Shown: piece after piece, positions 15,436 through 28,796 of the stretch
Numbering within the stretch: position 1 is the stretch's first letter
Layout of the letters: each line of letters begins with the position of its first letter
Assembly (NCBI GenBank): GCA_964036045.1
Contig: OZ038378.1
Location: forward strand, 3,906,001-3,970,000
DNA length: 64,000 nucleotides
Reading direction: 5' to 3'
Origin: Eutreptiella sp. 'Long Island Sound 2002'
Taxonomy: Eukaryota > Protista > Euglenida
Position numbers and translations under genes: made by a program
The notes under the pieces: generated by a model
Seen by the model: only the letters and a program-made list of their open reading frames with translations
The model's database searches: none
What the model was told of the DNA's origin: nothing

Positions 15436-18400
15436 TCACTGCATCTCCAAACTGGTGCTGAAGAGAAGACAAGGAGTCAGAATTGCAGCAGGTCAAAGAC
15501 CTTACCATCAACAACCCTGTGGTGTTACGTGACGAAACCTAACATGACATAAGACCCAACATAACATAAGACAACCTAAACAGCAGCATTAACATTAACA
15601 TTAACAGCAACATCCGTATTACCAACAACAGTAACATTAAATTAAAACATCAACTTAAACATAGGCATTCACATCCACATTCACATCAACTTAGCAATCA
15701 CCCGCGGAAATTGCCACTTATGCGCAATCCCAACCTCCCAAGGAGTAACACTAGAAATGCCAGGCAGACCCATGGGATAGATGCGACTGCGGCCCAACCC
15801 CTGAGAGGTGCGCGCTGGGTTGTGTGGCTTGATGCGATTTGGGGTGGTTTGCAGGCGGCAGCTGTCGTGCGTGAGGAATACTTGGATGAGGACGGCCTGG
15901 CAGCCCTCCTACAGTGCCGGGTGGCACACTGCAGCAGCATGCAACCCCACACCTGGCAACACCAGCGATGGTCTTCTCCTGTGCCTTGGCAATGCCGTCC
16001 TTCATTGCCTGTACGGCTGCCAAATTCTTCGCGGGGATGGTCGTGTACCTCGACAAAATCTCGCGGAACTCATCCCCATCAATGGCCTCCTTCTCCGTCA
16101 ACACATCAGTGATCTCGTCGATGGCCTCACGGTTGTCAATAATATGTTTCTGCGCGAAGGGCATGGACGGCTGCACGGCTGGGGGCGGGGGGGGGAGCAG
16201 GTCCAGACTCTCCCATTCGGCTCTCAGCACTCCAAAGCTCACTTCTTCCAGAGGCGCACCGTGGGCACTGTAGGCACTCGTTCGCAGGGGGGTACGTCCC
16301 TTGGGCCTCGCCCACAAACAGTCGCACACCGGACACCCAATATTTATGGCAACCTCTTTGACGTTGCAGTGCACTTGCCAATAGTTGTGTGGCACTCACC
16401 CCTGCCTGTTCCCCGGCGAGGGAGTTTACATGTGAGATTCGATCATTGGTGGTGGTCACAATTTGAATAAATTCTATTGCCAAGGCACCTCGAAGAGAGA
16501 CAACGGGCTGTTGGCTGGAGACATCCTTGGGAGCGGGGAAGCGCGGGGGGCGGGGGGGCTTAGGGTCTTTTGGGGGGGCCATGACCCAGGCTACCGGGGC
16601 CTAGCGGCCACTACGTGGGTCATATTGCCACGTGATGCACGGAGGGGTGACTGTAACCGGTCCCGATGCGACCTACCCCCCAGCTATCCGTCGAAAATTC
16701 GGGGGGGGGGGGCTGTTGGTGGGGGGGGGGGGTATTGGTGGGAGGGCAGGGGGGGGGGGGGGGTTGTGGTCGGGGGGTGCTGCGGGGGGGTGTGACCTAA
16801 TTAAAAAACAGACAAATGCAAACCAGAGGTAATGCACTCCACAGTCAGGCATAAATGCATCTTTATTCTCTATGCCAAACCTGGTTGAACCTCAAGACAC
16901 ACACTGTGTCTGAAACAGAAAACAGAACATCATGTCTGACTACATTAGTCAGACAATCACAGTCAGTAGCTGTCAGTCAGACATCAGCAATCAGTGTCGG
17001 ATAAAGACACCATGCATTACCGGCATGGCCGAAAAGAGCAACCCGCCGCTTGCCGGCTGGAGAAGACTCCTGGGGGGTGTGACCTAATTAAAAAACAGAC
17101 AAATGCAAACCAGAGGTAATGCACTCCACAGTCAGGCATAAGTGCATCTTTAATCTCTGCGGTGCTGGGGGGGGGGGGGGGGGTTTGCGCGCGAACCACT
17201 GCTACATACATACCTCCATGGAGTATGTGTGTATGGGGGTCAAACCAACATGGCATTCTCTGCACGTGAAGCAGGGTGCAGAATGGGGCAAGAGGCATGG
17301 CAGTCAGGGCACGACACAAACCCCCACATGGTCCAACCCGTCACACCACCGGGACCACTATCTCCCAAAACCCGGGGGGCGGGGGGGCTTGGGGGGGGGG
17401 GGGGGGTCGCATACAAGGATCGGGCCCGGTCACCCCCCCGTGACCTCATGACGACCCAAACGCACCCATCCCATAGGCAACAAAAGGAAGAAAAAAAAAG
17501 GGCAAATGTCGAAAAAGTTCCATGTGCCACTCAAAAGCTAAAATACCAGCAAATTCGGGGCTCTCAGCACACGGGCCTACTGGCCACTACTTGGGACCTC
17601 ATGGGTGCTCTTGTACCCGTATCGTCACCAAATGATGACCCAAAACCCCCCCCAGGGGCGACAAAGGAGTTTGGGAAAGGATCGCACTGTTCGACCTCGA
17701 ATCTACCTCGAGCAATGAACCTCCCAGCGGATGATTTTGCAATCCTGGAATCTCTTCATTGGTTAGGGGCTCCATATAGAAAGAAAAGTGGAATGGGACC
17801 TGAGTCCAAATCAACACTCTGCTGACAAATGCGGCCTCTGCTCAGGTGCAAAGGGGGGGTGGGGGCTTCGTGCGCAGAGGCGCACAAGAGGGTGGGGAGG
17901 CACGTAAGGTGCGCGCTGGGGTCGGTTTGCGCTACACTCAACGATCATCAATAACCCCATGGTCCCCATCGCTCATGGTACCCCTTGAGCACTTGGTCCC
18001 CATCCCTTATGGTACCCCTTGCGTACGGGGTTGCCAGGCTTGGGTGTTGTTTTTGTTGCCGCACTGCACAAATGCGTGAGCTTACCTTGGCCTCTTCGTA
18101 GCACTCGTCGACGATCTTCTTGATGTTGCGGTCAATGTCCTCCTGCAGCTGCTCAGAGACCTCATTCTGGGCCATCATCCGCATGATCATATCCTGACTC
18201 TGAGCCCCAGGCGATGCAAGACTCCAAGGACCGATGTCAGAGAAACCAAAGTTGATGACCATCTGCTTGGCCATGCCTGTCAATGCAGCACAGAATCATG
18301 CAGTGGCTTGCAAATACGTCGGGGGGGACTCATGGCAGGTTCTGAAAAACACTCTTGCCTTCGGCAAGGGCAAGGGACACCAAAGAGGAGAAGGGGGGGG

Positions 18401-27400: not shown

Positions 27401-28796
27401 AGGGTCTCGGACCATCGTTGTAGTGGCATACCGGCCGGAAAATGTCTCAAGCGCCATCTTCCCATCGGCTCGAGAAATCCTGACACGGGCAATCTTGTCC
27501 GCCTGTGGGGAACGACCACGGGGGGGCTTGTCAACCCAGAAGGAGAGTTGACGTGGAACCGTGTCCCTGGCAACCTGCCCCTGCCCGCGCAAGTTCAGCA
27601 GATTCAACCAGATTGCACCAGAAATCAGCCACGGAGAAAACGAGGTTCCAGGCTCCTGCAGCGGTCTGCAGAAGCAGCGGTTTATTTTTTCTCAAAGCAT
27701 GAAATTGCGGGAATCTGTTTCTCGCGACTTGACGACCACTGCCTTCTCATGCCATCTTCACCCCCTTCACCCGGCCGCCGGCTGGGCTGTTGGACTCAAT
27801 TAACAACAGCGGGCCTGCTGTTCCCGTTCAGGCGCGGGGAATTTGAAGTTTGCACGACTGTGGGACTCAACGACTGGCTGCCAATCACAACCCTTCTCTT
27901 TTCGACTGTGCTTGCAGCGTGAGGTCCAAAAAAGACAAATCGCCTGTTTGCGAACTCACGATCCCTGACCAATGTCCATGCCGAGGCTGAAAGACGGGCG
28001 CTTGTTCGCTGGAATTTCCTTACACTACCGACTGTCGAATGTGGAGACGGCACAGCTCACTCGCTGCTCAGTGTGTTGAAGCAAACGTGACATCTTTTGC
28101 ACGCAACATGGGGGCGCAGCACACCCTCAAAGCCTTCTTGAATGCCGTGTAGCTCCACTTATCCCCTTCAGGATACTGGTAGTTATCCACGGCAGGGGCA
28201 TCCAAGCTCGGAGCAGCAACAGTTGGAGCCCGGATCTCGACGGCAGGTGGTGCATCCAAAGCCAATGCAGGCACAGTGGGAGCTCCAGCACCGACCATGC
28301 TTGCAGCGGCAACGCCGGCAGCCACTTTGGCGACCTGCATAGCAGGCACGTGGTTGTCGTGCAGTGGGGTGCTCACGGTTAGCCCTGTTGTGGTGTTTGT
28401 CTTGTGTTCGTGTCAGGTTGCGCGGCTCGACTGCTGAGGCTTTGGGCCATGCACCCACAACTTCAGAAACCAAACACAGCAGGTGAAGGATTGGACGCAC
28501 CTGTGGTCGCACATTTGAAATAGGGGCGAATGAGGAGGCATTCACATTTGAAGTGAAGGACGAGACAGTAAGTGCAACACCTGATGAGAATAATGGCACG
28601 ACAAAATTGGTGAACGACTTCGGGATTTTGCAGTATTGGAAAGAATAGCACATCACACACCTGCTACCGCACAGAGTGCTCCTGTGACGAGGGAAATGGT
28701 TTGCCTTGAATGCTGCACCTTGACTTCATCCAAGCCATCAATCACCGACTGGTATTTTGGTCCTTGACCAGACAAAAGGGCATTTGAGGCCGACAT
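15436..28796 (-). CDS. ftsH: Plastid (thylakoid) ATP-dependent zinc metalloprotease FtsH with euglenid-type presequence; 14 exons, about 756 aa
   Basis: Exons on the minus strand: 28796-28661, 28580-28501, 28400-28125, 27502-27365, 24982-24822, 24232-24093, 23423-23298, 23039-22857, 21782-21579, 19634-19411, 18876-18684, 18276-18086, 16149-15953, 15457-15436. All introns are GT-AG and phase-consistent (2271 nt). Motifs: Walker A GPPGTGKT, Walker [32 protein letters not shown], zinc site [14 protein letters not shown]. The exon 3 acceptor and the last exon are tentative. Confidence 0.95.
16784..16905 (+). repeat. Short dispersed repeat family (copies at about 17072-17155, 19720-19875 and inverted at 2345-2420)
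   Basis: Shared ggggggtg(t)gacctaat...aaaaacagaca...gcaaa...gaggtaatgcactccacagtcaggcataa.tgcatcttta in all copies. Confidence 0.85.
17560..17830. repeat. Dispersed repeat family member (relatives at about 16570-16625, 20150-20260, 59050-59165 and in the 41.4-43.8 kb array)
   Basis: Shared gccactac(g/t)tggg.cc..atgggt motif, and gggacctgagtccaaatc, whose reverse complement is gatttggactcaggtccc. Confidence 0.6.
25627..25765. repeat. Nested tandem duplications (27/28-bp x2 and 48-bp x2)
   Basis: agct(t)gatcttctcccgtcgtagtc(a/g)gt at 25627 and 25654; gtcgtagtcggtagttgtgtttacaaagcccctaaaaacggtgatact at 25670 and 25718. Confidence 0.9.
26342..26487 (-). ncRNA. U4: U4 spliceosomal snRNA
   Basis: The minus strand reads AUUCUUGCGCUCGGG (U6 stem II arm), CUCAG-A-GCU-UAU-GA-UCU-CUUA-AGA-GA-AGC-CUGAG (5' stem-loop with kink-turn), AUUGCUAGUUGAAAACUACCCAAUUACCCC (stem I arm and central domain), a hairpin, Sm site AAUUUCUG and terminal hairpin GGCCCCUCACGGGGCC. 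Order and length (about 145 nt) match U4. Confidence 0.93.
26690..26762 (-). tRNA. trnR-UCU: tRNA-Arg(UCU)
   Basis: GCCCGCGTGGCCTAATGGATAAGGCACCAGACTTCTAATCTGGGGATTGCGGGTTCGAGTCCCGCCGTGGGTA folds as a cloverleaf. Anticodon arm CCAGA-CTTCTAA-TCTGG, T-loop GGTTCGAGTCC, and a TTTT Pol III terminator 7 nt downstream. Confidence 0.97.

Follow-up and report, generated by a model that had tools for sequence, protein, structure and literature searches.

A predicted plastid FtsH subunit of euglenophytes that combines a type A-like lumenal core with a type B catalytic body

Introduction

Thylakoid FtsH needs subunits of type A as well as of type B, and Arabidopsis loses photoautotrophic growth when either of them is lost (PMC9020784). 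Among the cyanobacterial proteins, FtsH3 is of type A and FtsH1/2 are of type B; type A FtsH uses the Sec pathway while type B uses Tat (PMC9020784). Which part of FtsH makes the two types non-interchangeable is not a settled question. It is raised anew by a gene in the stretch of DNA analysed here, a window of 64,000 nucleotides from Eutreptiella sp. 'Long Island Sound 2002' (contig OZ038378.1, positions 3,906,001 to 3,970,000). An earlier note, made from the sequence alone, had proposed that this gene encodes a type B catalytic body placed on a type A targeting and lumenal module. Is this a single expressed gene, do its parts really belong to different FtsH types, and how far does the type A-like piece extend?

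Results and Discussion

Structure and expression of the gene

The gene lies on the minus strand and consists of 14 exons, its coding sequence running from 28796 to 15436 (window coordinates), and all 13 introns have GT-AG borders (Table 1). Translation of this model matched P0142 exactly, a protein of 734 aa whose prediction is independent of the gene model and comes from a metatranscriptome contig. Moreover, spliced-leader-capped transcript contigs of ca. 3.1 kb, recovered from four runs that comprise estuary metatranscriptomes as well as transcriptomes with the label 'organism A', covered exons 1 to 7 without a mismatch. The same contigs join exons 3 and 4 to exon 5 and onward, which proves that the two parts are linked in the mRNA. 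Their loose 5' end, which stops at 28802, reads ATTTTTTTTC and matches the 3' terminus of the spliced leader of euglenids such as E. gracilis. At the other end of the gene, the 3' UTR continues downstream of the coding part of exon 14.

Table 1. Features of the Eutreptiella FtsH gene (window coordinates; residues are those of P0142).
Feature	Position	Strand	Residues	Evidence
Exon 1 with first hydrophobic domain	28661..28802	-	1-46	Transcripts, translation, hydropathy
Spliced-leader acceptor; ATG	~28802; 28796	-		Exon 1, transcript contig ends
Exon 2, Ser/Thr-rich, transit-peptide-like linker	28501..28580	-	46-72	Transcript joints 28332/28499 and 28576/28657, GT-AG
Exon 3, RR-less second hydrophobic domain, PALA/LDAP site, Pro-rich leader	28125..28334	-	73-142	Transcripts
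Exon 3, 3' end, start of type A-like FtsH_ext core at PEGDKW		-	from 127	tblastn with green type A
Exon 4, main part of type A-like FtsH_ext core	27365..27502	-	143-188	Transcript joints, Pfam, HMM, hhalign, trees, tblastn
Exon 5, end of lumenal domain, single mature transmembrane helix, Gly-rich linker	24822..24982	-	189-242	Transcripts
Exon 6, start of type B body (FEMEPDTG...)	24093..24232	-	242-289	Transcripts, homology
Exon 7, Walker A GPPGTGKT (aa 294), pore-loop MFVG (aa 326)	23298..23423	-	289-331	Transcripts
Exon 8, Walker B DEIDA (aa 353)	22857..23039	-	331-392	Homology, GT-AG sites, P0142 match
Exon 9, second region of homology RPGRFDR (aa 411)	21579..21782	-	392-460	P0142 match
Exon 10, AAA lid, peptidase M41 zinc-binding motif HEVGH (aa 515)	19411..19634	-	460-534	P0142 match
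Exon 11, M41 domain with type B motifs	18684..18876	-	535-599	P0142 match
Exon 12, M41 domain with type B signature DIGPWSL	18086..18276	-	599-662	P0142 match
Exon 13, C-terminal helices, euglenid-specific tail	15953..16149	-	663-728	Tail common to euglenid type B paralogues
Exon 14, coding part; stop codon 15436-15438	15436..15457	-	728-734	P0142 C-terminus STSLEMQ

The product is an FtsH protein, since it scored 728.6 bits on TIGR01241 against a cut-off of 600. The Pfam domains AAA, AAA_lid_3 and Peptidase_M41 all matched the exon translations, while FtsH_ext (PF06480) reached 24.2 bits in P0142, slightly below its cut-off of 25.5, and 28.5 to 30.3 bits in the orthologues. The FtsH_ext domain is followed by a hydrophobic segment (aa 197-222) that corresponds to a transmembrane helix. 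Walker A, Walker B, the pore-loop FVG, the second region of homology and HExxH are all intact, and P0142, as judged from these motifs, carries the full catalytic set of an active AAA+/M41 protease. NCBIfam has no paralogue-specific models for FtsH2/3/4, so the two halves could not be typed in this way.

Proteins of the same architecture were found in E. gracilis (P0144) and in a Euglena mutabilis-like protein (P0145). The euglenophyte-specific paralogue family formed by P0142, P0144 and P0145 is named EugX here. Its occurrence in three species indicates that the event that formed the hybrid is old. The E. gracilis member (seqid 3641) is listed in the plastid proteome with the entries SL, SPTP and class II (10.1101/573709 supplement). 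The window gene is an expressed nuclear gene of this family, coding for a predicted plastid (thylakoid) FtsH subunit.

The catalytic body is of type B

The earlier note had described the protein as type B-like from FEMEPDTG onward, and this description was borne out. FEMEPDTG opens exon 6, and two further peptides on which the note relied were located in exon 11 and, for the DIGPWSL stretch, in exon 12. Trees were built with FastTree and then with treekit, using a type B reference set named FTSH 2/8 and a green type A set that included a cluster named FTSH 1 by NCBI (Physcomitrium). In the tree of the body (residues 243-715), EugX and the canonical euglenid type B paralogues were sister groups (97/99) nested in green type B, and the type B clade including EugX was separated from type A with 100/99. 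Forcing the EugX body into type A was rejected (delta lnL 29.7, p-AU 0.012). In 30-residue windows, the C-terminal half of EugX showed 56-91% identity to green type B and 9-50% to type A, and identity to a land-plant FtsH2 (P0073) was ca. 65% over 84% of the query. When exon 12 was used as query in the representative search, mostly fragments and the type B scaffold P0073 were retrieved, with no close full-length relative.

In its body, its linker and its type B signatures, EugX thus resembles the type B thylakoid proteins Arabidopsis FtsH2/VAR2 and FtsH8 and Synechocystis FtsH2/FtsH1. The body of the type A proteins (Arabidopsis FtsH1 and FtsH5/VAR1, Synechocystis FtsH3) has FFSCAASEFVELF and GLTFF, whereas that of EugX has another motif and GLTWF.

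The lumenal core is type A-like

The lumenal domain gave a different picture. It had been claimed to fit type A without gaps and not to fit type B, and this held with real sequences. The type A-like core covers approximately residues 126 to 191 of P0142 (ca. 65 residues), encoded by the end of exon 3 and by exon 4, and the peptide originally quoted for it, PEGDKW...KGVQV, occupies residues 127-190. When the window was searched by tblastn, a green type A query matched exons 3 and 4, while type B queries missed exon 4. On profile HMMs the EugX core scored 41-47 bits with green A and 18-27 bits with the cyanobacterial FtsH3-type, against 1-3 bits with the cyanobacterial FtsH2-type, 8-16 bits with euglenid B and 4-7 bits with green B; on this last model, euglenid B reached 35-67 bits and the green B member Tara1 166 bits. 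By hhalign the N-domain matched type A with 99% probability (E=8e-18, green A) and type B with 21% (E=1e-3, green B), which places the type A fit far beyond chance. In sliding windows, the A-like signal was confined to residues ~106-180 in all three orthologues.

EugX shares the motifs PEGxxWxY..F, (E/A)RVR(I/F)S and (N/R)DPx(L/V) with type A; identity to green type A, however, is only ca. 32-40%. Type B thylakoid FtsH has a near-invariant lumenal segment, SSRMSYSRFLEYL...SPELGNR...VQLPG, with a loop insertion, and EugX has neither. This insertion of 6-8 residues is present in green B, euglenid B and the cyanobacterial FtsH1/2-type, whereas it is absent from EugX as it is from type A; accordingly, the loop forms SPELGNR and DPELDNR are both missing in the EugX lumenal domain.

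Phylogenies of the N-domain, which rest on ca. 75 columns and in which green sequences represented type A, grouped EugX with green A (97/81, and 94/90 once cyanobacteria were added); in the latter tree the FtsH2-type clade excluded EugX with 100/99. The two parts of the protein, analysed separately, therefore differed in affinity, the N-domain going with type A and the body with type B. Holding the EugX N-domain within euglenid B cost 18.3 lnL units with a marginal p-AU of 0.047. A second AU test against the topology of the body was also marginal (p 0.030), its constraint forcing an unrelated rearrangement as well. The statistical support for recombination that can be drawn from a domain of ca. 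75 columns is moderate and not decisive. The affinity of exon 5 to A or B was ambiguous, and the downstream breakpoint falls within this exon or at the exon 4/5 junction. At the level of sequence, EugX is confirmed as a natural hybrid in which a type A-like lumenal core sits on a type B catalytic body.

The leader belongs to the euglenid type B lineage

P0142 has two N-terminal hydrophobic domains, an ER signal-peptide-like one (aa 33-56) and a second one at aa 73-90. As had been stated before, no twin-Arg precedes the PALA/LDAP site. The RR-less, Sec-type leader of type A thylakoid FtsH is similar in this respect, while all green type B leaders have the RR (Tat) motif. However, RR is also absent from the canonical euglenid type B proteins P0265 (Eutreptiella braarudii), P0266 (a cluster with Euglena mutabilis) and P0267, and its absence therefore characterises the euglenid proteins in general and does not mark EugX as type A. 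Comparison of the EugX leader with those of P0265-P0267 by hhalign gave 92% (E 6e-7), the homologous region extending from the second hydrophobic domain across the AxA site and through a Pro-rich stretch to ...DAPA(V/L)xD. EugX also has the euglenid-specific C-terminal tail in common with these paralogues. Leader, tail and body alike are thus of euglenid type B descent.

Since the RR-less leader is common to the euglenid type B paralogues, the A-like tract is an internal patch of ca. 65 residues with euglenid type B-like sequence on both flanks. Of the composite module first proposed, the type A-like lumenal core stands; a type A-like module that includes the targeting signal was rejected, the leader being homologous to those of euglenid type B paralogues. 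That both lineages of euglenid type B have leaders without the RR found in green type B also bears on the re-sorting of Tat and Sec substrates after secondary endosymbiosis.

Alternative explanations

A hybrid could be produced artificially if exons of two FtsH genes had been fused in the gene model or during assembly of the transcripts, and assembly chimeras of the two paralogues do occur in a public transcriptome (P0264/P0281). This reading has next to no probability and is effectively refuted: the 14 exons follow one another on the same strand of a single contig and are separated by GT-AG introns, identical spliced contigs without mismatches were obtained in four runs, and the architecture is common to three species. 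In addition, tblastn revealed in the window no alternative or mutually exclusive N-domain exons and no second FtsH_ext exon. A real gene might still have acquired its pattern without recombination. EugX would then be a paralogue of type B in which a relaxation or change of selection led to rapid evolution of the lumenal domain, with loss of the loop and drift or convergence towards the short general FtsH_ext form that type A has kept. A position of EugX basal to all type B N-domains was not rejected by AU tests (p 0.32 and 0.16), its N-domain branch is long (1.6-1.75 changes per column), and the short loop, which occurs in another cyanobacterial paralogue group too, is probably ancestral and not specific to type A. 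The N-domains of euglenid type B are likewise divergent and in part resemble type A, scoring 20-35 bits on the A HMM where green B reaches 9-11, and euglenid N-domains may for this reason be subject to drift or repeated conversion. We nevertheless consider this origin unlikely, because the resemblance is type A-specific, the scores given above for green A and FtsH3-type comparing with only 2-11 bits on the HMM of the other short-loop group, and because it extends to the common motifs. Moreover, the type B N-domain is near-invariant in the green lineage from land plants to prasinophytes, the euglenid sister paralogue has retained the type B lumenal domain with its loop insertion, and 71% conservation of the EugX N-domain between Eutreptiella and Euglena gives no hint of relaxed selection.

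The direction of the exchange could also be the reverse. EugX would descend from the euglenid type A gene, in which concerted evolution replaced the leader, the transmembrane/linker region, the whole catalytic body and the tail with type B sequence, the lumenal core remaining as a relic. The mosaic predicted is identical, gene conversion between paralogues is common, and the leaders of both euglenid families are weakly type A-like (AxA/xD..PP, no RR), the EugB leader matching green A with 68% by hhalign. This history would require conversion to either side of a small island, with tracts that together amount to more than 85% of the gene, and a separate VAR1/FtsH5 orthologue is reported in E. 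gracilis (seqid 3864; 10.1101/573709 supplement), so that a type A gene has survived together with its type A body. We regard it as improbable.

Proposed origin and function

The patching of a type B gene, the reading preferred here, would have taken place in the ancestor of Eutreptiella and Euglena, where a duplicated type B gene may have received the end of exon 3 and exon 4 from a type A paralogue by ectopic gene conversion or unequal recombination. Canonical type B paralogues are present in Eutreptiella braarudii and Euglena mutabilis. The first hydrophobic domain of the product is predicted to mediate entry into the ER, followed by crossing of the plastid envelope, and the RR-less second one would direct thylakoid insertion by a Sec-type or spontaneous route. 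Once cleaved after AxA, the protein would face the lumen with its A-like domain and the stroma with its ATPase and protease, and would span the membrane with one helix. The EugX protein may then join hexamers with other FtsH subunits and degrade damaged thylakoid proteins, e.g. D1.

One may speculate that the A-like lumenal domain lets a type B engine occupy an A position of the ring. A broader and rather doubtful idea is that euglenophytes have a three-class thylakoid FtsH system (A, B and hybrid), in which the lumenal/N-terminal domain and not the body sets ring position or partner, and in which the hybrid brings a type B engine to type A positions or gives alternative hexamers. If so, EugX would amount to a domain swap carried out by nature, with a bearing on why types A and B are not interchangeable. 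EugX is a conserved and expressed hybrid whose E. gracilis orthologue occurs in the plastid, and it lends itself directly to testing whether type identity resides in the lumenal domain. Rodrigues et al. reportedly engineered, in 2011, swaps of signals and domains between Arabidopsis FtsH2 and FtsH5 in a study of Sec and Tat integration (cited in PMC9020784). Such swaps resemble EugX in that N-terminal parts and body come from different types, but they are laboratory constructs, whereas EugX is a natural, conserved and expressed gene. Its mosaic structure also calls for care in annotation, since P0142 would be labelled simply as FTSH2/8-like by any phylogeny of the entire protein, of which the published euglenophyte FTSH tree is an example.

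Structure and expression of the ftsH gene

The minus strand of the window carries one FtsH gene of many exons, whose translations match the Pfam domains AAA, AAA_lid_3 and Peptidase_M41 as well as solved bacterial FtsH structures. Transcripts from two estuary metatranscriptome runs and two transcriptome runs labelled 'organism A' were mapped over 23050-29049. Seven exon blocks were covered by transcript contigs of 2.9-3.1 kb with 0 mismatches; the six introns that these contigs lack all begin with GT and end with AG when read on the minus strand. These contigs join exons 3-4 to the exons that follow, as the earlier note's reading of the gene as a hybrid supposed. 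An artefact, in the form of a misjoined gene model or assembly, was excluded. Past 28802 the contigs continue as ATTTTTTTTC, which we take to be the 3' end of the euglenid spliced leader. On this identification, the ftsH mRNA would receive its leader by trans-splicing at a point 6 nt before the ATG.

Exons 8-14 were located by homology and GT-AG sites. The resulting 14-exon CDS runs from 28796 to 15436, and its translation is identical to P0142, a 734-aa protein predicted independently from a 3135-nt JGI metatranscriptome contig. P0142 scores 728.6 bits with TIGR01241 (cut-off 600), has an FtsH_ext match just short of the Pfam cut-off, and its Walker A, Walker B, FVG pore loop, SRH and HEVGH motifs are all intact. 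Judged from its sequence, P0142 is a bona fide FtsH and its protease is likely to be active.

Euglenid relatives and reference sets

P0142 has two orthologues of the same architecture, P0144 of Euglena gracilis (EG_transcript_3641) and P0145, apparently a Euglena mutabilis-like protein; these three proteins are referred to as EugX. A protein search also retrieved the paralogues P0265 (Eutreptiella braarudii), P0266 (whose cluster includes E. mutabilis) and P0267. Their lumenal domain is that of a canonical type B (FtsH2/8-like) protein, SGRMSYSRFLEYLD...SPELGNR...VKVQIP, and they served as the euglenid type B set. A loose end (GVPFFNCSGS...) in the transcript mapping reveals transcripts of a canonical type B paralogue alongside those of the window gene in these samples.

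The green type B set consisted of land-plant and green-algal proteins named FTSH 2 or FTSH 8 by NCBI or UniRef, retrieved by word searches. For type A (FtsH1/5-like), metagenome contigs were scanned with a DNA pattern for AASEFVELFVGVGA, presumably a motif of Arabidopsis FtsH5, which was used as a lead only. Green-lineage proteins were present at 34 of the 120 AASEFVELFVGVGA loci, with the N-domain LPEGxxWRYSEF...KVERVRF(S/A)KDG...LPNDP(E/D)LVDILA.NGVDISV. This set is type A by name because one member, L028, shares a 90% cluster with Physcomitrium 'FTSH 1, chloroplastic-like'. A picocyanobacterial paralogue group (L014, L021, L034, L096 and others, from metagenome loci) has the AASEFVELFVGVGA motif, like eukaryotic type A, together with a short-loop N-domain that otherwise differs (SYSQLL...). 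A scan of genome contigs for the pattern PRGQAxGLT(W/F)F supplied cyanobacterial FtsH1-, FtsH2- and FtsH3-type sequences, of which the first two belong to type B and the third is type A-like (PMC9020784).

A type A-like lumenal core on a type B body

Compared in sliding windows of 30 residues, the three EugX proteins all resembled green type A more than green or euglenid type B only at residues ~106-180, and were type B-like from residue ~226 to the end. The euglenid type B control was B-like along its whole length. The EugX N-domain scored 41-47 bits with the green type A HMM and 18-27 with the cyanobacterial FtsH3-type, against 4-7 for green type B, 1-3 for FtsH2-type, 2-6 for FtsH1-type and 8-16 for euglenid type B. 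With hhalign it matched green type A at 99% (E 8e-18) and green type B at 21%. In the alignment, a loop insertion of 6-8 residues is common to green type B, euglenid type B and the cyanobacterial FtsH1/2-type, and is missing from both type A and EugX. The A-like tract begins inside exon 3, between aa ~120 and 127; its downstream limit falls somewhere in aa 191-236, either where exons 4 and 5 join or in exon 5 itself. A search of the window for alternative FtsH_ext exons found none.

Separate phylogenies of the two parts disagree. In the body tree (468 columns, LG+C20+F+G4 PMSF), types B and A were split at 100/99 and EugX grouped with euglenid type B (97/99), nested inside green type B; constraining the EugX body with type A cost 29.7 lnL (p-AU 0.012). 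In the N-domain trees (73-75 columns), EugX grouped with green type A at 97/81, or 94/90 with cyanobacteria included, and an FtsH2-type clade of green B, cyanobacterial B2 and euglenid B excluded it at 100/99. Forcing the EugX N-domain to join euglenid type B, as in the body topology, cost 18.3 lnL (p-AU 0.047). Forcing it with euglenid and green type B gave p 0.030, a constraint that is unclean since it also pushes euglenid B into green B.

Leader and targeting

The earlier note had described a type B body on a type A targeting and lumenal module, a recombinant subunit. The A-like lumenal core on a type B body is real; the targeting module is not type A-specific. Over the 55 residues upstream of the core (second hydrophobic domain, AxA site, Pro-rich stretch and ...DAPA(V/L)xD motif), the EugX leader is homologous to that of canonical euglenid type B (hhalign 92%, E 6e-7; reciprocal HMM scores 7-25 bits). 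Profile comparison of this shared leader gave a weak relation to green type A and no significant relation to green type B. The twin-Arg motif occurs in every green type B leader and in neither euglenid family, so that its absence from EugX, also noted earlier, holds for canonical euglenid type B as well.

TatA/TatC and SEC1 are present and cpSRP is absent in euglenophytes (Zahonova et al. 2018, PMC6242988). The E. gracilis plastid proteome lists P0144 (seqid 3641) among the proteins detected there and assigns it a spliced leader and a presequence of class II (10.1101/573709, supplement). For EugX, we infer both the import mechanism and the role of the lumenal domain.

Origin of the mosaic

The incongruence between N-domain and body is supported. 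Taken by themselves, the tree statistics are of moderate strength, which the shortness of the domain and the length of its branch would lead one to expect, and a position of the EugX N-domain basal to all of type B was not rejected (p 0.32 and 0.16). Most of the weight is carried by the profile scores and the indel. That a type B lumenal domain diverged fast, without recombination, seems unlikely.

A euglenid-specific C-terminal tail is common to EugX and euglenid type B. Both this tail and the leader are shared by the two families, which makes the A-like tract an internal one. Less probable still than fast divergence is the opposite course, with type B sequence overwriting a type A gene. Old gene conversion or recombination is the best explanation of the mosaic: a type A lumenal core would have been placed into a duplicate of a euglenid type B gene before the Eutreptiella/Euglena split. 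Euglenophytes have 6-9 plastid FTSH paralogues, all grouped with At FTSH1/2/5/8 (PMC6242988). E. gracilis seqid 3864, with the records GDJR01050003 and GEFR01003864, is listed as the orthologue of AT5G42270 VAR1 (10.1101/573709, supplement); a canonical type A has therefore been retained in euglenids as well, a plausible donor of the core. No natural A/B FtsH chimera was found described in the literature searched, and Zahonova et al. mention no FtsH hybrid.

Other A/B combinations

With the green type A HMM, the lumenal domain of P0265-P0267 reaches 20-35 bits, against 9-11 for that of green type B, and contains A-like stretches such as VKEVRFSQD (VERVRFSKD in type A). Their leader lacks twin-Arg and reads AxA|AD..PP, as in green type A. 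These features may be traces of a Tat-to-Sec switch in euglenids, or of A/B exchange that took place there more than once.

P0264 and P0281 (EukProt Euglena mutabilis TRINITY_DN715) are assembly chimeras in a public transcriptome: their N-terminal two thirds match P0145 and their C-terminal third matches P0266. P0262 (JGI, 1133 aa) comprises, in a single reading frame, a type A-like FtsH body and then an entire type B-like FtsH, which has an FtsH_ext domain and a leader-like stretch of its own; on these grounds it looks like a tandem A-B polyprotein. P0261 of the dinoflagellate Effrenium voratum (1260 aa), compared by listing alone, is similar in length and Pfam content.

Intron contents

Two small RNA genes, ~200 nt apart, lie on the same strand as their host gene, and a ~92-nt repeat family, probably a small dispersed element, occurs in two other introns.

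Features within introns of the ftsH gene
Feature	Location	Position	Strand	Remarks
U4 snRNA gene, with tRNA-Arg(TCT) gene	Intron 4	26347-26487 and 26689-26763	(-) both	U4: Rfam RF00015, 72.4 bits
~92-nt repeat, two copies	Intron 12	16780-16871, 17067-17158		287 nt apart, 96% identical
~92-nt repeat, diverged copy	Intron 9	19750-19841		64%

Short, mismatched RNA contigs (68-151 nt) with many loose ends accumulate at 26990-27280, also in intron 4, in all four runs. This pile-up is probably a dispersed repeat transcribed elsewhere, outside the ftsH mRNA.
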